DNA of 64,000 nt from Calcarisporiella thermophila CBS 279.70 (lineage: Eukaryota > Fungi > Calcarisporiellomycota), in NCBI RefSeq assembly GCF_041956535.1, contig NW_027192202.1, forward strand, positions 134,515 through 198,514, read 5' to 3'. The position numbers and the translations under genes were made by a program. How positions within the stretch are numbered: the first letter of the stretch is position 1; the number at the start of each line of letters is the position of its first letter. The notes under the pieces are model-generated. The model did no database searches, was not told the DNA's origin, and worked only from the letters and a program-made list of their open reading frames with translations. Positions 35,314 to 46,927 of this stretch are shown one piece after another.

Positions 35314-36285
35314 TTATGAGATGGGCTTGAAGTTCGAGTCGATTGTGTTAGCCTGGTCATTGATAGAATCGGCGGGGTTGCTCCGCTTGCCAATGGTTGC
35401 CGCGCCTTGATCCTCCACGTCCTGCTGGAGCATTTCTTGGACCATTCGCATCCTAGCAGCAACCAGCTCCTTCTGGCTCATATGCTTTGTTCGTTCTGAA
35501 TCCGAACGATATTTATGTTCGGGTTGGGTATGGGCGATCTCGCGCTTCTGGTAGGGGGGTCTTTTAACGGGGTAGGATCGCAGCCGTTGAGGGTAAAATG
35601 GGCGAGTTTGACGGTTCTGACGGTTCTGCCCTTCGCGATCCACTAGGAGCTCGAATCGTTTATCGATAAAGTGAGGTTTATGATAGCTATGATGCTTCCC
35701 GTAGGGAACATAAACAGGCTGGGCAGACATGCGCTGAGGTGCACCACCCGAGAAGAATTCATAGGCTGGGTCATATGAGACGCGCTGAGGATATCCCATA
35801 GGGTCATGGTGATCAGAATACCAGAAATCATCTTGGTAGTAGTAGCCCTCCGGACCCTGTTTCATAAGACTAGAATTATCGCCCGGCCCCGATGCCTTTG
35901 TGTTTGCGTTCGAATTCTCGCTGGACTGCTCATCCGAATTCACGGCCGAGTTGAACAAATCCAAGTGATCAAGCACATGGATATTATTAAGGGCATTATC
36001 TATCACACCACGTTTCATCTTTCTCCACTGTTTTTTGTAGATGCCTTCCCCGCCTTGCTTCGAGAGAACCGAATTGTCGCCTGGACCTGATGCTTTGGTG
36101 TTAGCATTACGATTCTCCGAATCCTGTGGATTAGAATTGACCATGGAATCTATTAACTCCAGGTGATCAATAAGATCCAAATTGTTGACGGCATTGTCAA
36201 GAATTCCACGACGTAAGTGCGCTGCACCTTGCGCGAGACTCGCGAAGAGCATAAGCGAGAGTGTTATACCAAGCGATGGTTTCAT
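35314..36285 (-). CDS. Secreted Kex2-type precursor with two 46-aa G(I/V)(L/I)D..NN..ENxNANT repeats
   Basis: Signal peptide MKPSLGITLSLMLFASLAQG; RR/KR sites directly precede two homologous repeats (starting 36207 and 36009); more KR sites downstream; intronless. Confidence 0.8.
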   Translation of the reverse strand: MKPSLGITLSLMLFASLAQGAAHLRRGILDNAVNNLDLIDHLELIDSMVNSNPQDSENRNANTKASGPGDNSVLSKQGGEGIYKKQWRKMKRGVIDNALNNIHVLDHLDLFNSAVNSDEQSSENSNANTKASGPGDNSSLMKQGPEGYYYQDDFWYSDHHDPMGYPQRVSYDPAYEFFSGGAPQRMSAQPVYVPYGKHHSYHKPHFIDKRFELLVDREGQNRQNRQTRPFYPQRLRSYPVKRPPYQKREIAHTQPEHKYRSDSERTKHMSQKELVAARMRMVQEMLQQDVEDQGAATIGKRSNPADSINDQANTIDSNFKPIS

Positions 36286-37676
36286 TTTTGTTCAATTATT
36301 GTTTTTGCGAGAATGGGGGGCGTGGGTATATGCAGGGATATCTTGTTTGTAAAATGAAGCGTGTACTTAGGAAAGGAGAGGGGCTCGTCAAGAGTTGGAT
36401 AAAGGAGAAAAGAATTATTAAATAGGTATACTGCTACTTCTTGGGTATAGGAGAGAAATATGGACACTAGTTTGTAAGGACTAGATGGATATGTATAAAA
36501 AAATAATAAGGGCGATGGCGAGTTCAAGGATGGAACGGGGGAGGAAAGAGAAAGGAAAAGTGTAAAATGAAGCGTTTAAAAGTGATTTGAAATTCGGCTG
36601 AACCAAACCCCAACGATACATTCTTCTTTGTCTCTAGCTGAAATGCCGGAATTTTCTTTCCTTTATATTGCATACCGGTCAATTTCATGCCACGGTTGAG
36701 AATGAAAGAATGTTGCAACAGAAATTCCAAATCGGAAATTTCTTGGTATGAAGATAATAATAATCCTGTCGTTATTAAATCTAGAACCATCCCCTCCATA
36801 TATTAATTACTTTCAAGACTACTCTTTGCGTTTTCAAATATATTTTTGACCAACATACAGTTGACTAACACAATTGTTCTCCCTCAAAGCCATCAAGTTC
36901 GTTGAATAAAGTATGATGGTATAGTGTCGAATGAGGCTAGAACCATATCGTCATCTTCGATGGTCAATGCTCTTATCCAATTATGTCAAGAATCAAAATA
37001 AAATTAGAAAATAATGTCACTGGGATCTGGGACAAATCCAGACCAGAATTCCAAATGTGCCTTCCATGAAGAATTGGCCAATGGAGATTTCATATTGGAC
37101 CTTTGATTAAGTCGCTGATGGAAAAGTCATCGGGTCGAGACGAGAGTTCAGATCAATCATGCTTACGCTGTAAGCAGCAAATTACTTGGTTAGAAACACT
37201 GGTTCTTGTATATTTGGAGTATGAAACCTATTATGGATGAAGAAGGAACTCCACTATTGAGCGATCTGAAGAGGGCATCAGGTACTTATAAACCACTTCC
37301 ACGTAGATGGTACTCAATAACGGAATTTATGAGTGTGCAATCCATGGCCGTGTTATAAGTATTGAATAGTGTTTGTAATTCAATGGTCGTCTCAGCCTTC
37401 CATCTGGTAAGTCTGAATGCCCTTGCTCCACGAGTTAAGGCAGTATGGTTTTGAGGGTTTCCGGATGATATCCAATAAAAATCTTTAATAGAACTATAAT
37501 AAAGAAATGCTACATAAACATATATAGGCAGGGCAAGTAGGAATGGGTTCAGGCATCTAGTGCTCACAAACAAAAAGGAAAAAACTATTGTAAAAATGGA
37601 AGATAGAATGATTATCTAAATGGTGTGCGCATTTAGGCAGGATGAAGCCACCAAATAGCATTCTATTGAATTCCCA

Positions 37677-38201
37677 TTAAAACAGGAACCAGAGTGCAGC
37701 AGCAAAAGTGGAAATTAATCCAAAATCACCAAGATTGAACACTCTCGCGCCCCTTATTGGGCTCGACGCTGCGGATATGCTACCGTTCACTCCTCCTGTC
37801 GGTAATCCAGCGCTTATTGATCTTGAGCCCGTGGGGTAAGAGGTGTAGCCGCTTGTCCCAGAAACTGAAACGACAGTGCCAGTAGCGCCGGGTAAGGCAG
37901 CAGTTCCAGTCGAAGTGCCATTCAAAGACGCACTCGAAGGCAAGGCAATTGCTTGCTTCTTGTTCTTATCCTCCTTCTTATTGTCCTTTTTGTCGTCATT
38001 CTTATCGTCCTTTTTATCGTCCTTTTTATCTTTGTCTTCCCGTTTGATAAGATTGGCATTGGTGTCCAAAATCACTCGTTCATCAATATCCGGCACGCGG
38101 GCCATGGAATTAGCTTGCTGATTAGCGAAAGATGGTGATGCAATGAAGATGAAAAGAAGTACATAGGTGAAAATGAGACATTGAACGTTGACGCGCTTCA
38201 T
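37677..38201 (-). CDS. Small secreted, probably GPI-anchored protein with D/K-rich repeat
   Basis: Signal peptide, LIKR site, DKKDDKKDDKNDDKKD repeat, S/T/G-rich stalk, hydrophobic C-terminus (ISTFAAALWFLF). Confidence 0.7.
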   Translation of the reverse strand: MKRVNVQCLIFTYVLLFIFIASPSFANQQANSMARVPDIDERVILDTNANLIKREDKDKKDDKKDDKNDDKKDNKKEDKNKKQAIALPSSASLNGTSTGTAALPGATGTVVSVSGTSGYTSYPTGSRSISAGLPTGGVNGSISAASSPIRGARVFNLGDFGLISTFAAALWFLF

Positions 38202-41120
38202 CTTGGATGCAGAAGAGGCAAAACACGGATGATATTACCAGTGCTAATGAAGGGAATGAGGATGGGAATGTTTACTTTCAAAGAGGAGAAAAACTAAACA
38301 GAACGTGAGGAAGAGAGAAGTTGTGTTGGTATAAAAATCATTTGGATAGCAGAAAAAAAAACAAAGTGAGACCCGATCCTTTTATGCAAATCAATTTCCT
38401 CTTGTGGATTTATTGAAACAAACAAAACTCGATTAGGGCATCAATGGGATTGGACATTTTGTTAATTTCTAATTACCAGAAGCTGTGACGCTTCTAAAGT
38501 TCGTGGAGATTTATTCTGCATTCTATTATGCTATTGAAAGATATCAGCACGAAATAACTCATTATTTCATCCCATCCTTCACTCCCCCTATCCCCCCTTT
38601 TGTCAAGCCAAAGACAACGCTAAAATTCCCTACATCTACTAGTGCAGCGGTTCCCACAACACGAAGCTCTAATCGCATTGTTCAAATCGAAAGGCCTAGT
38701 GCGTAGAATTGCATCATGTAACTAAATGAAGTTTGGCAACTTCTGACGCAATGAGGTAGATTGCTCCGGTTTTCTACTAGAACTAGGTCAGAGCTTTTTT
38801 CAGTGGATCATTTCTACGATGCGCTAAAAGAACTAAACCTATTTTCGTGAGATGGATGCAAATCCGAAACTCTTATCCAATTTACTCTAATACTTTAATT
38901 GCATTGAAAAATTTTTAACAGCAATCGCGCTTTGACTTTCAATATTAATCACTCTTCTGTGTGGGGATATCCATACTTTTTAATGACTAGTATTCAGAGA
39001 GTGTACGATCTAAGTGGTACAGTTCAAAAACATAATGAATTTGGCTATGGCAGAGCAATCTTAATTGAATTGAATTTTAATGTTTGAAACAGACATAATG
39101 GAGTGCAAGATATTTGGTAATTGTGATTGCTTATTCTTATAAAAAATATAAATGGTGCAAGATGGCATATCAGTCAATTTGTAATACTAGATAGATCATT
39201 GTTTCCTCAAATACATATTTAAAATTCCTTTGTATTGGAGCCCTCTAGTCATTTAATCCAGCTTATATTATCGGTCAATTATTATAATCACTGATCGATA
39301 GAGGAAATTGACGGTAGTGAAATTTCGATAATAGCGTTAGAGTAAACTATTTCAATGACTTATTATTGTCCCTAATAAATTTCTCCGGAATGCTCTCCAA
39401 CATACCTTGTTTGCAAAATTTTTATTCAGGATCCTGCGATGACTTGCTGTGCAAACTAGATCCATTGTGCAAAGACAAGCTGTCTTGCAAGATTTGGCAC
39501 GAATTGTTTATCCGCAAATGCCGCAGTTAAATAGAGCTTACTGCTACCGAGATTTTTAAATATCGTCTACAAGATTTTTACTGTTGGCCTACGAGTAATA
39601 AAATTGATATACATTTTATCACACGATAATTCTGTTCACGGAGATGAGATATTCGGTGTTACGAGTTTGAGTACAACTAAATTTTAGATGGAATGGCTGT
39701 GACAGGAGTGAACAAGTACTACGATAAGGCTGAGGCATTATGAATAATCAACAGAAGCTCCAAGGGTGCAGTCACGTATATTTCTTTTAACATTATACAT
39801 GAATAATATATGAAAAATGGAAGGATCTGGTTTGTTCTACGTAATCTTTACCAGTTGAAAATTTTGCATTCAAATATATATTCTTTCTCAATTATATCAT
39901 ATTTTACCTACAGCGAAGGCAAATATGCTGCAGATCATTTGATTTAGTTGTTATGAGTGGGATGAGTTCGTAATTGAATTCTTGTTTCTGTCGGCATATT
40001 GAGAAGAAAAAAAACATTGACTATCAGATGTTTTCAACTCCTATTTAACTTTAAATATATTGACCAATGGCCAATATGCACATTGAATACTGCCAATATA
40101 AAGTAGGCTTTATATAAGCCCCAGTAATATTTCTTGAGAAATTTACAATTATAAATAAATAAAAAAAAATGATCCACTTATCTATTGTATGGTAAAGCAC
40201 TATTTCACTCGTACTTCATATTAGCTTCGCCCCAGAATCGCTTAAGATTCTAGCGTTATAAGGTTAATGCGTACGGAAGATAGTCAGCCTCATTTCTTTT
40301 ATTATAAGGCTTTAGAGAGTAGAAATGGATTCCCGAAATTTTGATATAATTGGCTTACTGGGAATCCTTGTAGGTCGCGAGAATTGATTGATAGCTTATA
40401 CCAAACACCTTAATGATATTTACCTCGGTCGAAACGCATGTATAATTCACAGATACATAGATACAAAGAGATATATTACAGCATTAATTCAAAGGGGTGA
40501 ATGCAGCGGAAAACCAAACTGTGTAATATACCGAGAACAAAATTATAAGTTTGAAATATCGTTCAGAGCCCTGTACACTTAAACTATTTCTTTTTTCAAT
40601 CACCTGCACATGTGTAGTTTAGTCAAAAATTTAAGAGATAGAGCAGAAATTTTTTCCCCGAAAAATACACCTGTGCATTTGGGAGTTGTGGGCTCTCAAA
40701 GTGGTAATTGAGCGCTGGTTGATGCACAAATCTTCTTACATATTGTTTGCAATATCAAAGTAAAGATACAAATTCTCGGGTTGGATTTTCTACTCTGAAC
40801 ACTCGTACAAAAATAAGTTTAAGTGTTGCACTCCATTTTATAGAAGTTTTGCGTGAATTTCACGACTTGTTTCCTCCACATGTAAATCCTTTCAGTAAAA
40901 TCTATTCGCGGAGAAGGTGGATGGTACACATAAAAAATTCATTGGAGTTACACTTGCCAGGTGGCTTACCCACGAAAAAAATATGTATATACCTGCTCCA
41001 TCTCCAAAATTGCAAAATGTATTTATTTACTTATTCTCGTTTTTAAGTCTGGGTTTGACGCTAAATATATTTATTACTCATATTTACTGGTCTTGTAATT
41101 TCATTCTGTGTGCATTCAAT

Positions 41121-42764
41121 ATGAGGCAGACCATATTCACCTTCTTATTAGCCTTATCTCTGGGGGTATTTGCACTTGGAAGCGGTCAGAATTCGCAATC
41201 ATTATACAAAGTTGAACATATTCAGTTAAAAGACTTCATTCGACAATCCAAACGCGTAGGTACGTTGGCTAGACCATGTCAATTGCTTCATAAGTAGTGC
41301 TTAATATTACAGTTGGTACTAGTTTTTAGTCATAGAAAGCAAAATGACACTTATATAATCAATAAATCAAACGATATTAATTGGCCCAGAAAATCCTTTT
41401 CTAATTATAATAGCTGTAAGTAGCGTTGCGAAAATTTTACAACTGTACCCTTCTAATGCTCATATACGCTTTAAACAATCCCCTTGAATTACAATTCTAC
41501 AGACGCCAAGAACCGGAAACATCCTCTCATGTAAAAGGTAAATGCGCCTATTTTAGTATAAAATATCTGCTAGCTCCAACAAATTCTTTTCAGACAAACG
41601 GGATAGCCTTGCTATACTCAAATGTGATTCTCAACATAAATGCCCGGGAGACAAGTGTTGTCAAAACGGCATATGTAAGGATCAGCCTTGTAATAAAGGC
41701 CGAGAAAGGTCACAAAAACCAGTACGATGTAGCTCATTGGATGACTGCCCTAGCGATAGTTGCTGCCAAAGTGGTCGATGCCAAATCTGCAAATCTCAGC
41801 CTGAACGGCCCAAAAAGTGCAATATCAGTAAAGATTGCCCAAATAAAACCTGTTGCCAGAATGGCAGGTGTCAAAATTCCCCTTGCAGAGCGACAACAGC
41901 ACCGAAACAACCAAATCGTTACCGTTGGACTTATTACTGGCTTGCAGATGAAAGAAATGAACCTAGTGGTCGACCCATTAACCAACGACTCAAAACATGC
42001 AAAGGAGAATTGTTACATAAAACCATCCGTGAGTTTGCCGAAAAGGCAAGGATGGAAGGAACCGCAATTTTGAGCGACGGGCGAATGGTTAATTTGGGTT
42101 GTGATTGTAAAAAAAGCTTTTCTTGTTTTATGCTGGTAGACACCAAATCCTATCCTTATGGCATCGGCAAAGATAATCGACCTTTGGATCCATTCGTTAG
42201 TGTTGGTATGTACTTGCATAGGAAATATCTCTTAAAACCAGTTCATTTCTAAACCACGGGCCTACTTTCAATTTTCGGATAGCCTCCAACTCACACTCTG
42301 CTGGCACTGTATTTTATGTTTCTGACCTTGATGGCTGGATACTTCCAGACAAAAAAACCAAGCATAATGGATGCGTGAGAATTGACGATGAGGGATGGAG
42401 TTTGGAGAAATATCATCTGGATTTCTTCGTGGTGACGGAAAGCAACTATAAATATTTTGACCAGATCCATGCTATTGAGAATGTTGACGCTTGTAAAAAA
42501 GATTGCGAGTTGTTGAATTATGGCAAGTGGTACTCTTCCACAACACAAATTTATGTGAATTAACTAATATCGTTTACAATAGCGGAAAAAATGGGAATGC
42601 CTACCGTGCCTGAACGGTGTAGAAATGGTTCATATAACGTGAACTCACCACCAGAAAAGTGTAAGTGTGATTCAGATTGTCCTGAAAATCATAGTTGCAA
42701 GAAAGGGAAGTGTTTGAGCGGCTCATGTAGCGGTAAATCGTCTTCAAACCGCCAAATCCAATAA
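41121..42764 (+). CDS. Secreted Cys-rich-repeat protein with 3D (MltA-like) domain
   Basis: Signal peptide MRQTIFTFLLALSLGVFALG; C-x5-C-x4-CC-x2-G-x-C repeats; TYYWLADE..RMEGTAILSDGRMVN..PYGIG..LDPFVSVA..LDGWILPD..HNGCVRIDDEGWSL..HLDFFV. About 6 exons inferred. Confidence 0.7.
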
Positions 42765-44394
42765 TCTATTCGTTTTTTCCGATGAATTTTTTGAAAGTAG
42801 ACTTTCAACCCATTTCTCTCTATGCGATTATTTGTTGATATTTTCTGCTACTAAAATTCAATCTACTGATACTACTCTCCTTGAATGAATGAGCCGTAAA
42901 AAATCTTTAATGAGACATGTGCATCAATTTGTTTTGTTCTCTAAAGCATTTCAAATTGGTATATCAATAGGTCGTTCAAATTTATCTTCATCACTCTTGT
43001 AACCAGTATTCAATTAATCGTACGCTAATTAGGTGATATATTTTATTCTATAGCATTCTATTAATAGCTAAAACAATTAATATTGCATTTCTTATCGAAC
43101 TCCTTTTGCACAGAAGCTTTATTTTTTGTTTATATAAGTTATATTTTTCTCAAAAGATATTAATCATATTGAACTTAATATTTCTCTAGAAAACCATCGA
43201 AATTTTCTACTTAAGTTCTTTTCTTTGTTATCACACTTAACCCCACGATTATCTTAAATGGGTGTTTTTTTCAATGTGTCTCTTAAAATGTGACCATCTA
43301 CTTTTGGTAAGGTGTACCAAGTAAAGAAAATCGGGCGTCTACCAAATTAGCTGTTAGAAATAGTTAGATTGGAAAAGTGAGGCTGCTAGATCAAGCATGA
43401 TAGCAAGGGTCCAAAATGATGCTTGTTTACTCCCATGTGGATTAACGTGGGCAATATTTTTAGATTTAGTTGCTATTCAATCTAATATTTACATGGGGGT
43501 GTGAATATTTACTAGAAGACCTCGGGGATAAATCCTATTTGCTCTGATTTAAATATTACAAATTACCTCCTTGCATAAGTTAAAAAAAAAAAGATTCATA
43601 TTACCCTGCACCCTGGAATCCATTCAACATACAGTAGGTAAGGTTGAAAGGGTGGATAGAACAATGAAATGAACATAATGCTCTCTACATTTTACTCTTA
43701 CGATTATTTGAATTGAGATTTGTTGCACGGAGTCCACAAACTATAGAAATGCTTTTCGGGCAAGCAAATAGAAAAAAATTACATTCCATTACCTATAATA
43801 TTTACATAGGCTTTCACTCGCATGATCATCCCACTTGGCCCTGGCATGAGAGCATGTTTGAAGATCTACAAAATCATATTTTTACTTTCGGCAGAAGCAA
43901 TCCTGTTCGCCGAGTTTAAAACCGAAGTTATTCGGCTAGCCTTAACGCCTAAAATAAAACACATACAAAATCATCTTTTTATGACGGGACCATGGCTTTT
44001 CCATTCCGATTAAAGCCAGGATATAGAGAAGTGCCCGAGCGCTCCTCGACCGCTACAACATAATTTCTCTATTTCTAGAGAAAACAACAAGAAAGCTTGT
44101 CATATATAATTTCCAAAAAAAAACCGTTAAATCCTTCTAAACTTAATGTAAACGACGCATTTTAATTGTAGGTCTTATAAGAACAAAGTGATTGTCATCT
44201 TTCGTTCGGTCATTACAAAATTTAAATAGATTAGCTCGGTTTGATTGACATTTGCAGGTAGATCCCTAAAAAAATACCGTTGCTTCGTTATTTTATGCTA
44301 TCTTAAACAACATATTTTCTTTTTAAACCTTCCTGGTGCTTGGATAGACTCGATTTCTCATTTTTCCCAGTCAAAAACCATTTCCATCTCTAAT

Positions 44395-46927
44395 ATGAGG
44401 TTCATCGCTCTGACAATAGCTTACCTTGGGGCACTTATGCTCTCACAAGCTGCTCCCAGTGGAAAACGTCGCGATCTAGAGGACACTTCGACCGATGCAC
44501 AGAATGAAAGTAAGCTGGGCATCCTCAATACCAATATAAACTCGGACACGTACTATCATCATCACCACCATCATCACGATGACTGGGACGATGACCATCA
44601 CCACCACGATGATTGGGACGATGATCACCACCAGCATCACCATTGGGACGACGATTTCGTCAAACGTAAAATTCCTGTAGAGTCCGAAAATAATGCACAA
44701 AATGAGAGCAAGCTAGGCCTCTTTAACACCAACTTTAACTCGGGAGTATATTATTCTCACGATCACCACTATCATGATGATGATTGGGACGATGATCACC
44801 ACCACGATGATTGGGATGACGATGATCATCACCATCACCATCACCATCACCATCATTGGGACGATGATTTCGCCAAGCGTGAAGTCCCTGAAGAATCCGA
44901 AAGTAGTGCACAAAATGAGAGTAAACTTGGCATTGGCATCCTAAACACTAATATTAACTCGGACACACATTACTCTCATGACCACCACCATCATGATGAT
45001 TGGGATGATGATCATCACCACCACGATCACCNNNNNNNNNNNNNNNNNNNNNNNNNNNNNNNNNNNNNNNNNNNNNNNNNNNNNNNNNNNNNNNNNNNNN
45101 NNNNNNNNNNNNNNNNNNNNNNNNNNNNNNNNNNNNNNNNNNNNNNNNNNNNNNNNNNNNNNNNNNNNNNNNNNNNNNNNNNNNNNNNNNNNNNNNNNNN
45201 NNNNNNNNNNNNNNNNNNNNNNNNNNNNNNNNNNNNNNNNNNNNNNNNNNNNNNNNNNNNNNNNNNNNNNNNNNNNNNNNNNNNNNNNNNNNNNNNNNNN
45301 NNNNNNNNNNNNNNNNNNNNNNNNNNNNNNNNNNNNNNNNNNNNNNNNNNNNNNNNNNNNNNNNNNNNNNNNNNNNNNNNNNNNNNNNNNNNNNNNNNNN
45401 NNNNNNNNNNNNNNNNNNNNNNNNNNNNNNNNNNNNNNNNNNNNNNNNNNNNNNNNNNNNNNNNNNNNNNNNNNNNNNNNNNNNNNNNNNNNNNNNNNNN
45501 NNNNNNNNNNNNNNNNNNNNNNNNNNNNNNNNNNNNNNNNNNNNNNNNNNNNNNNNNNNNNNNNNNNNNNNNNNNNNNNNNNNNNNNNNNNNNNNNNNNN
45601 NNNNNNNNNNNNNNNNNNNNNNNNNNNNNNNNNNNNNNNNNNNNNNNNNNNNNNNNNNNNNNNNNNNNNNNNNNNNNNNNNNNNNNNNNNNNNNNNNNNN
45701 NNNNNNNNNNNNNNNNNNNNNNNNNNNNNNNNNNNNNNNNNNNNNNNNNNNNNNNNNNNNNNNNNNNNNNNNNNNNNNNNNNNNNNNNNNNNNNNNNNNN
45801 NNNNNNNNNNNNNNNNNNNNNNNNNNNNNNNNNNNNNNNNNNNNNNNNNNNNNNNNNNNNNNNNNNNNNNNNNNNNNNNNNNNNNNNNNNNNNNNNNNNN
45901 NNNNNNNNNNNNNNNNNNNNNNNNNNNNNNCACCACTGGGGATGACGATTTCGCTAAACGTGAGGTCTCCGAGGATTCTGAGGGGAGTGCACAGAATGAG
46001 AGTAAGCTCGGTATTGGCATCCTAAACACCGATATCAACTCGGACACATATTACTCTCATGATCATCACCATCATGATTGGGATGACGATCATGATCACC
46101 ATCATCACCATCACCATCACCACTGGGATGACGATTTTGCAAAACGTGAGGTCTCCGAAGATTCTGAAGGAAGTGCACAGAATGAGAGTAAGCTCGGCAT
46201 TGGCATCCTAAACACCGATATTAACTCGGACACGTATTACTCTCATGACCACCACCACCATGATGATTGGGACGATGATCACCACCACCACCACGATCAC
46301 CATCACCACCACTGGGACGACGATTTCGCCAAGCGCGGAATTCTTGACGGATCCGGAAATAATGCACATGTGGGTAGCCATATAGGCGTTGGAAACTCCA
46401 ACTTTAACTCGGACTCACAATATGCTGAGAATAACAATGCCAATACCTACTCAGATGGCAATTGGGATAACTCAATCTATCAGTATGATGGAGGTGAACT
46501 CGAGAAACGTGGCATCCTGGATGGATCCGGAAATAATGCTCAGATCGGCAGCCATATTGGTGTTGGTAACACTAACACTAATTCACATTCCAACCATGCT
46601 GAGAACAGCAATGCAAACACTCATTCTGAAGGGGATTGGAATAATTCGATCTACCAAGGCGATGACTGGGACGATGATGATTGGGATGAAGACGACTGGG
46701 ACGATTTTAAAAAACGAGGAATCCTCGATGGATCATTGAACAACGTGCAGCTTGGTAGTCATATTGGAGTTGGTAATTCTAACACTAACTCACATTCCAA
46801 CCATGCTGAGAACAGTAATGCAAACACCCATTCAGATGGGGATTGGAATCATTCGATCTATCAGGGGGATGATGACTGGTGGGATGAGGACGATTTTGAT
46901 AAGCGCAGAGCCACCGCTCGATCTTAA
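44395..46927 (+). CDS. Kex2-processed repeat protein (KEP) with His/Asp/Trp-rich and Asn/Gly/Ser-rich peptide repeats; spans an assembly gap
   Basis: Signal peptide MRFIALTIAYLGALMLSQA. Tandem KR-delimited units AQNESKLG(IG)ILNTxINSDT-(H/D/W-rich)-FAKR occur on both sides of the gap, followed by three KR-GILDGS units; stop at 46927. Confidence 0.85.
44473..46336 (+). repeat. Tandem coding repeat, type A (about 180-200 nt units)
   Basis: At least 5 unit starts visible, each containing gcacaRaatgaRagYaaRct..aactcgg and cac/cat/gat runs. Confidence 0.9.
45032..45930. other. Assembly gap (899 N) inside the tandem repeat
   Basis: Run of N flanked on both sides by the same His-rich repeat. Confidence 0.99.
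46337..46906 (+). repeat. Tandem coding repeat, type B (3 units GILDGS..ENxNANT..NSIYQ)
   Basis: Three near-identical KR-delimited units. Confidence 0.9.

Follow-up and report, generated by a model that had tools for sequence, protein, structure and literature searches.

A bacterial-type peptide module in putative kexin-processed repeat proteins of Calcarisporiella thermophila

The thermophilic, early-diverging fungus Calcarisporiella thermophila CBS 279.70 carries, within a 64,000-nucleotide stretch of contig NW_027192202.1 (assembly GCF_041956535.1, positions 134,515 to 198,514 of the forward strand; this whole stretch is referred to as the window, and its own numbering is used below), two genes for predicted secreted proteins that contain repeats of one peptide module of approximately 46-51 residues. 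Gene 1 lies at 35314-36285 on the minus strand and gene 2 at 44395-46927 on the plus strand. A computational analysis of these genes and of their relatives makes it rather likely that they encode kexin-processed polyproteins from which a peptide of bacterial type is released, a peptide that was probably acquired by horizontal transfer. This reading concerns the biogenesis and the ancestry of the peptide and not its function, for which several candidates are weighed below.

Ends of the module in bacterial and fungal proteins

A profile built from 70 modules was searched against 1.84 billion representative proteins and gave 59 matches at E <= 1e-3, the paralogs of C. thermophila included; apart from the paralogs, nearly all of the matched proteins are short and contain one module. 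Four modes of export or processing are seen among the bacterial forms. In more than 20 distinct bacterial proteins the first Gly of the module directly follows a Sec cleavage motif (AxA↓G); in three metagenome proteins (P0021-P0023) it follows a double-glycine leader (GG↓G), in four proteins the initiator Met (three more begin one or two residues inside the module), and in four to five a short non-hydrophobic leader with a terminal Arg. This Gly also marks the processing site in the relatives from other fungi. An in-frame stop codon upstream confirms that P0017 is leaderless, and the double-glycine form P0021 is encoded in the gene order HlyD, peptide, C39 peptidase with an ATP-binding cassette (ABC) membrane domain, and ABC ATPase. 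At their other end, the bacterial genes stop 3 to 6 residues past the module.

Both ends can be followed in Streptomyces sp. AC550 (L043), the predicted mature peptide of which comprises 51 residues. Over its full length, this peptide is 86% identical to the module that ends L024, a C. thermophila paralog with 12 modules; this fungal counterpart is bounded by RR and a stop codon, and the other eleven modules of L024 are 61-82% identical to the L043 peptide. Thus, the two termini of the bacterial product fall at positions that are dibasic sites in the fungus. The distance between modules in the fungal precursors ranges from 49 to 201 residues, and its mode of 53 residues equals one bacterial mature peptide plus KR. 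The initial annotation, which was made from the window sequence alone, had proposed that a peptide is released by Kex2 and begins right after the dibasic site. This proposal is supported by the position of the bacterial first Gly after AxA, GG, Met or Arg, by the coincidence of the bacterial mature C-terminus with the next fungal KR, and by six matches to the kexin P-domain in the genome. Since the predicted mature ends of the bacterial proteins match the putative fungal cleavage sites, the comparison provides unusually strong comparative evidence on the released product, and we infer that the fungus cleaves the precursors at the dibasic sites and secretes the peptides. A precursor equipped with a signal peptide would enter the secretory pathway and, late in this pathway, would be cleaved behind every dibasic pair by a convertase of the kexin type; a carboxypeptidase would then trim the basic residues, giving free peptides that start with G-(I/L/V)-(I/L/V)-D.

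All six kexin P-domain matches (P_proprotein, PF01483) lie above the cut-off, and five of them are in frames without internal stops. They are located at G000:C5:1110032-1112179, C7:757755-759762, C17:258385-258645 and C19:558104-558436, and include two head-to-head pairs. Most fungi carry one Kex2, and the expansion of kexins in C. thermophila may be linked to the abundance of precursors with dibasic sites.

The module family in the genome and in the window

The five full copies of the module in the window are located, with their dibasic pairs, at 36070-36213 and 35872-36015 in gene 1 (minus strand) and, as the so-called type-B modules, at 46331-46474, 46505-46648 and 46712-46855 in gene 2 (plus strand). 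Including the pair, each copy comprises 48 residues, and the five are aligned by MAFFT without gaps, with 16 invariant columns and a mean column identity of 72% over the 48 columns. Consistently, a BLASTP comparison of the N-terminus of gene 1 with the tail of gene 2 spans two consecutive modules at an E value of 2e-20 with compositional adjustment on. KR or RR precedes all five modules; none of them contains Cys, and the Cys pattern of hydrophobins is accordingly absent. The initial annotation was therefore right in aligning the two repeats of gene 1 with the three type-B repeats, in the consensus that it derived from them, and in placing the start of the module directly after a dibasic site. 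It had described the module as shared by two secreted genes; the presence in both is confirmed, but the scope was too narrow, because the family comprises 19 genes and at least 95 copies.

This number was obtained in two steps. A profile of the five window copies matched 91 sites, spread over 10 contigs, in the 28.2 Mb genome of this member of the Mucoromycota; 16 further regions were then retrieved and all of their open frames were re-scored with the profile, giving 95 module matches in 23 open reading frame (ORF) pieces that correspond to 19 genes. Four of the 19 genes (gene 2, with its gap at 45032-45930, as well as L023, L032 and L034) are split by assembly gaps within arrays of His codons or repeats, so 95 modules is a lower bound. 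The N-terminus encoded by each of the 19 genes is basic over a short stretch and hydrophobic after it. A dibasic pair precedes 73 of the 76 full modules (KR in 46, RR in 24 and an offset KR in 3), and the remaining three are first modules that stand right after the signal peptide with a single Arg in front. A precursor contains 1 to 12 copies of the acidic, Asn-rich module, and the spacers between them are mutually unrelated, comprising His runs, Lys/His stretches, CxxxxC with His, acidic Trp-rich segments and long polar linkers. For pairs of modules within a gene, the median ratio of nonsynonymous to synonymous substitution rates (dN/dS) is 0.13 at a dS of approximately 1, and for the second and third type-B modules of gene 2 it is 0.07 at a dS of 0.97; such values indicate that the module copies are old and that each is under constraint. 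A word-based protein search returned the paralogs alone, all of them annotated as uncharacterised C. thermophila proteins.

Some of the paralogs (L024, L025, L026 and L031, on contigs C9 and C20), but not the window genes, have modules with a tail Cys (DGC or GDC). This Cys is paired with a Cys before the next RR (KRxxxCRR) in 12 of 14 modules, against 4 of 40 modules that lack the tail Cys (Fisher p 4e-7, for repeats that are not independent). The pairing suggests a disulfide-closed C-terminal loop that would enclose an internal KR site.

The architecture of these precursors, as read from their sequences, is that of a known class, the Kex2-processed repeat proteins (KEPs), which are numerous in Mucoromycota, where their peptides tend to be long (PMC6339444, PMC7329392). 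A signal-like N-terminus (by eye), repeats bounded by KR or RR, and kexin genes in the genome are all found in C. thermophila, and the KEPs surveyed previously (Le Marquer et al. 2019, PMC6339444; Umemura 2020, PMC7329392) are alike in the signal peptide and in the tandem units separated by KR or RR. By contrast, the commonest class of KEP units has 9-24 residues, compared with approximately 50 here (PMC6339444, PMC7329392), and the present family differs further in that 19 genes carry at least 95 units of one type with bacterial stand-alone homologues. No report of a bacterial stand-alone homologue of a KEP unit was found, and Calcarisporiella is absent from the main text of both surveys (PMC6339444, PMC7329392). 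Repeats flanked by KR are also a hallmark of the precursors of fungal peptides that are synthesised ribosomally and modified post-translationally (RiPPs) (PMC7329392), and PatG-type protease domains occur upstream at one bacterial locus, so that a precursor of the ustiloxin type has to be considered. We regard such an assignment as very improbable, because the module of 46-51 residues is far above the known core lengths of fungal RiPPs, the conservation covers the entire module rather than a short core, and no modifying enzyme is conserved beside the Streptomyces genes. In addition, the genome gave no match to UstYa/DUF3328 (PF11807), although the control genomes gave none either, which leaves the absence of this family unproven.

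Gene 1 is a single ORF for a 323-residue precursor that is identical to protein P0001 and consists of two full modules, a Pro/Tyr-rich linker, a conserved helix-like putative pro-motif and a degenerate half module. The hydrophobic N-terminus, read from the translation as a signal peptide of residues 1-20 (36226-36285), is followed by AAHL and RR. The first predicted peptide, with its RR at 36208-36213, occupies 36016-36213 and has its core at 36070-36207 and a tail up to the next KR. The second module (35872-36015, from the alignment) is made up of KR at 36010-36015 and a core at 35872-36009. A second conserved motif of approximately 25 residues, which ends in IGKR (35383-35457), is also present in the paralogs L021, L023 and L030; it precedes a full module in several paralogs and may be a pro-region. 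The degenerate C-terminal half of a third module stands right after this KR (35332-35382) and corresponds approximately to module positions 27-43, an assignment made by eye via the paralogs, with no profile score.

Gene 2 is interrupted by an assembly gap of 899 N (45032-45930). The part before the gap (44395-45031) begins with an ATG at 44395 and a signal peptide (44395-44451) followed by KRR, and then contains the type-A units A1 (44473-44667), A2 (44668-44880) and A3 (from 44881, truncated by the gap), which match the profile at E values of approximately 2e-6 to 4e-6. The ORF after the gap (45932-46927) contains A4 (45962-46147) and A5 (46148-46336), both with a profile E value of 8e-5, each of which consists of a head with homology to module positions 8-32 and a His/Asp/Trp-rich tail with a terminal KR. 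In the same frame as these two complete type-A units follow the three type-B modules. The first type-B peptide (56 residues, 46337-46504) lies between KR at 46331-46336 and KR at 46505-46510; the second (46511-46711), the tail of which is acidic and Trp-rich, ends at KR 46712-46717; and the third extends from 46718 to 46900 and is followed by KR at 46901-46906, a short tail and the stop codon, which ends the ORF at 46927. The ORF after the gap has neither a Met nor a signal peptide, whereas the part before it has both; it therefore cannot be a separate gene and, together with the 82-87% DNA identity between type-A units on either side, argues for a single gene that spans the gap. The triplets CAC CAC TGG at 45931-45939 are in frame with the ORF before the gap, given the nominal gap length. 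A run of four G is found at 45938-45941, where the other four unit junctions have three; the extra G may be an error at the contig edge or a genuine frameshift.

The initial annotation had also noted an echo of the module in the heads of the type-A units, and all five units indeed match positions 8-32 of the profile, at E values from 2e-6 to 8e-5 that refer to a search space of one sequence and are possibly inflated by the Asn-rich composition. Type A thus looks like the N-terminal half of the module joined to a His/Asp/Trp-rich tail. Between the two genes, a small ORF (37677-38201, minus strand) encodes a secreted Lys/Asp-repeat protein with a hydrophobic C-terminus, the sole Pfam match of which, to ETRAMP, is sub-threshold (21.9 bits against a cut-off of 29.1).

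Distribution and ancestry

The initial annotation regarded the peptide family as lineage-specific, which is contradicted by the presence of the module in Actinomycetota, other bacteria, three further fungal phyla and two plant assemblies. The named carriers are Streptomyces, Actinokineospora (a metagenome-assembled genome), Orbilia oligospora, Dactylella cylindrospora, Ambispora leptoticha and Crucibulum laeve, and in O. oligospora the module occurs in several strains on contigs of up to 3.9 Mb. The plant assemblies, each with a single-module protein, are those of Stipagrostis (P0032, on an 8.1 Mb contig) and Papaver (P0053, on a 9.5 kb contig), and both proteins may represent either transfers or contamination. 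When one genome of each bacterial species was scanned with a sequence pattern, the module was detected in nine species of Streptomyces and one of Phytomonospora; in a sample of 401 Streptomyces species, it is carried by 7 (1.7%), each with a single copy, and one bacterial copy sits on a plasmid of 1.18 Mb. Pfam contains no family that matches gene 1 or gene 2 at E <= 1, including ChpA-C, Rodlin and the curlin repeat; NCBIfam has no model for the relatives or for the tail of gene 2 and gave a sub-threshold match to the leader model TIGR01847; and a sequence profile search of the PDB gave no matches at E <= 10. By sequence, then, the module family is an uncharacterised one without a Pfam, NCBIfam or PDB relative, and it is distributed over fungi of four phyla and bacteria.

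Since the homologue of the module in Actinomycetota and other bacteria is the entire mature product of a small stand-alone gene, the module most likely entered the fungus horizontally. The identity between kingdoms reaches 86% at the protein level and 72.5% at the DNA level, and the base composition follows the host, with a GC content of 60% (78% at third codon positions) in the Streptomyces gene and 46-52% in the fungal genes. A patchy distribution combined with high cross-kingdom identity and a host-like base composition is not expected from vertical descent, and horizontal transfer is the simplest reading of these sequence data. A transfer from bacteria to fungus is favoured because the bacterial forms use four modes of export or processing. 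After the transfer, the module would have multiplied into Kex2-processed repeat proteins. The window genes would be derived members of this expansion: gene 1 contains the commonest fungal subtype together with a decayed third module, and gene 2 a Gly-substituted subtype with acidic, Trp-rich tails as well as at least five half-module units joined to His/Asp/Trp-rich tails.

A module tree of 117 rows, with 48 columns that are too few to fix its deep forks, places the gene 1 modules within a clade of 28 members restricted to Calcarisporiella (support 98/81) and the type-B modules of gene 2 on a long branch of their own (support 100/100). The modules of L035, which is a compact paralog with four modules, and of L026 group with the double-glycine peptide P0021 (support 86/81), and those of L024 lie near the Streptomyces sequences L042 and L043.

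Several points weigh against the reading as kexin-cut polyproteins of bacterial ancestry. In the same tree, the Calcarisporiella modules do not form one supported clade and bacterial sequences are interleaved with them, a pattern compatible with a single transfer, with several transfers or with a transfer in the opposite direction. The signal peptides were called by eye only. A few bacterial proteins (P0018, P0044 and P0050) carry the module within a larger protein, which shows that it can also act as a domain. Finally, gene 2 as assembled is broken by the gap and by the frame shift that the extra G causes.

Structure, candidate functions and related systems

The hydrophobic residues in the N-terminal half of the module occupy positions 4, 5, 9, 12, 14, 15, 18, 20, 21 and 25, and the hydrophobic moment of this half peaks near 110 degrees, with no beta periodicity. 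AlphaFold2, given an alignment of 67 modules, placed a helix at positions 3-23 of a gene-1-type module (predicted local distance difference test score, pLDDT, of approximately 64) and left the conserved polar half as coil. The type-B modules of gene 2 have Gly at the hydrophobic positions 15 and 21, and a model of the three of them is beta-rich, with an equal strand pattern in each module (mean pLDDT 50.5). Both models are of low confidence, and they differ in secondary structure. A four-copy complex prediction for the gene 1 peptide scored 0.02, with the fold of the peptide itself uncertain, a result that bears on self-association in neither direction. Foldseek found nothing in the PDB at E <= 0.001, its top rows being FapC, CsgA, beta-helix enzymes and ice-binding proteins. 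An internal periodicity of 12 residues is not significant (column autocorrelation at shift 12, p 0.09-0.18), and shifts 4 and 16 reach p values of approximately 0.015-0.02 before correction for 23 shifts. In the ESM Atlas, no cluster reached 0.9; the named clusters nearest to the Streptomyces protein are rodlin/chaplin (0.79-0.81, a lead only), and the one nearest to a type-B module is DUF2076 (0.79). The initial annotation had suggested a beta-solenoid or functional amyloid, which these predictions neither support nor exclude.

The beta-rich model nevertheless has a bearing on processing. If the precursors remained uncleaved, they could be modular wall or matrix proteins in which tandem modules form a stacked beta-solenoid, with the basic pairs built into the fold. 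The strand pattern repeated in each type-B module, the predicted template modelling (TM) score of 0.51 for that model, and the FapC and CsgA fibrils and left-handed beta-helix proteins at the top of the Foldseek rows all speak for such an arrangement. However, the mean pLDDT of this model is low and the other four models reach only 30-45, the Foldseek rows have E values of 0.09 or more with TM scores of approximately 0.1, and the variable module spacing with unrelated spacers fits a regular solenoid poorly. Moreover, the bacterial single modules have free ends exactly at the sites that are dibasic in the fungus. An uncleaved solenoid thus appears unlikely, and the kexin-processed polyprotein remains the preferred reading.

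With regard to function, the motif E-N-x-N-A-N-T-(K/R)-A-x-G and the free N-terminal Gly are conserved across kingdoms, which points to a specific interaction of the module rather than to mere composition. A self-associating surface or matrix peptide, by analogy with the Ustilago repellents or cyanobacterial EbfG, is a tentative candidate that may well prove wrong; metal binding, signalling or something else share what is left beside it and the bacteriocin-like role considered below. The very high gene dosage, the mostly filamentous soil-dwelling habit of the carriers, and a peptide size and number near those of the Ustilago repellents speak for a coat or matrix. The Ustilago maydis Rep1 protein is a secreted precursor that Kex2 cuts into approximately ten peptides of 35-55 residues, and the repellents are wall-associated and form fibrils. 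They are the nearest fungal system in peptide size and number, but there is no sequence relation, and no Ustilago protein is among the named matches of the profile search. The predicted peptides are strongly acidic, with net charges of -3 to -16, which is unusual for bacteriocins and amyloid formers alike and speaks against both a coat and a weapon. No neighbouring gene, such as one for immunity, recurs across the nine actinomycete loci, which counts against a weapon. Chaplins, rodlins, CsgA and FapC resemble the module proteins as small, secreted, Asn/Gly-rich proteins, but differ in that there is no Pfam or significant structural match and in that the module peptides are strongly acidic.

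Alternatively, the released peptides may be bacteriocin-like weapons against competitors in hot compost, with the many diverged copies acting as a cocktail. The bacterial relatives use three export modes of class II bacteriocins (Sec, a double-glycine leader with a C39 exporter and HlyD, and leaderless export), the gene behaves as an accessory gene that is present in single copies in few Streptomyces species and once on a plasmid, and the AlphaFold2 helix in the N-terminal half is amphipathic, in keeping with the hydrophobic moment near 110 degrees. Against this stand the acidity of the peptides, the lack of a conserved immunity or transporter gene at the Streptomyces loci, and the combination of purifying selection with high cross-kingdom identity, which is not a weapon-like diversification. 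In addition, the matrix proteins EbfG1-4 of Synechococcus elongatus, of which EbfG1-3 are amyloid-prone and EbfG2 forms fibrils, likewise depend on a double-glycine leader and a C39 exporter (PMC4997328, PMC9981879). A double-glycine leader is common to class II bacteriocins, EbfG1-4 and P0021-P0023, and among these three metagenome proteins an adjoining C39 exporter gene was seen for P0021 only; most relatives of the module differ in that they either have a Sec signal or are leaderless, and the fungus in using kexin sites. The likeness to EbfG and to named bacteriocins lies in leader and export and not in demonstrated homology. Taken together, a role as a weapon is possible but doubtful.

The products may also be mainly metal-binding, in which case the module would carry tails rich in His, Cys or Asp/Trp. 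His runs, or CxxxxC together with His, make up many of the spacers, the type-A units consist mostly of His, Asp and Trp, and one leaderless bacterial copy (L062:5616-6165) begins 5 nt past a gene for an ArsR/HTH_5-type regulator, beside a divergent FecCD-type ABC importer. However, this context comes from one protein only (on two contigs, L062 and L063, that are nearly identical), tails of this kind are absent from the bacterial peptides, which stop soon after the module, and it is the module rather than the tail that is conserved; metal binding as the main role is thus improbable.

Two further gene contexts were noted. At a metagenome locus (L058:7001-8155), a C-terminally extended module protein is followed after 46 bp by a gene for hydrophobic surface binding protein A (HsbA, E 1e-12), and fragmented S8/PatG-type protease ORFs lie upstream of the module gene. 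HsbA was rejected as a recurrent neighbour, because it stands beside this one metagenome copy and is absent from five peptide-carrying actinomycete genomes. The suggestion in the initial annotation that the peptide is a hydrophobin substitute is weakened, since the genome contains three matches to class I hydrophobins (PF01185) that exceed the Pfam cut-off. These are located at G000:C25:89122-89352 and at G000:C18:374809-375051 and 373349-373579 (best E 3.7e-21). Hydrophobins are regarded as a trait of Dikarya, and their matches in this Mucoromycota genome may reflect another transfer or an overlooked lineage.

A further comparison for the processing itself is the alpha-factor precursor of Saccharomyces, from which a 13-residue pheromone with a known receptor is obtained by Kex2 release and Kex1 trimming. 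It is alike in being a secreted repeat precursor, but differs in peptide size, in its Ste13-trimmed spacers and in the pheromone role of its product. As far as the searches show, three features are new: the family to which the module belongs, the existence of stand-alone homologues in bacteria whose termini match, and the scale of the expansion in C. thermophila.

It is tempting to speculate further, although the following scenario as a whole is fairly unlikely, that a self-assembling coat or matrix peptide of soil bacteria was captured by a thermophilic early-diverging fungus and amplified approximately a hundred-fold in kexin-cut polyproteins, which would display variable metal-binding or acidic tails on an assembling module. 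If true, this would be a functional-amyloid or repellent system that crosses kingdoms and has spread horizontally to several fungal phyla. KEPs are widespread in fungi, yet a function or an origin is known for almost none of them. A repeat unit that can be traced to a stand-alone bacterial gene would be an example of a transferred peptide gene that became a eukaryotic polyprotein, and its function could be approached in tractable Streptomyces with a single copy instead of in a fungus with approximately 95.

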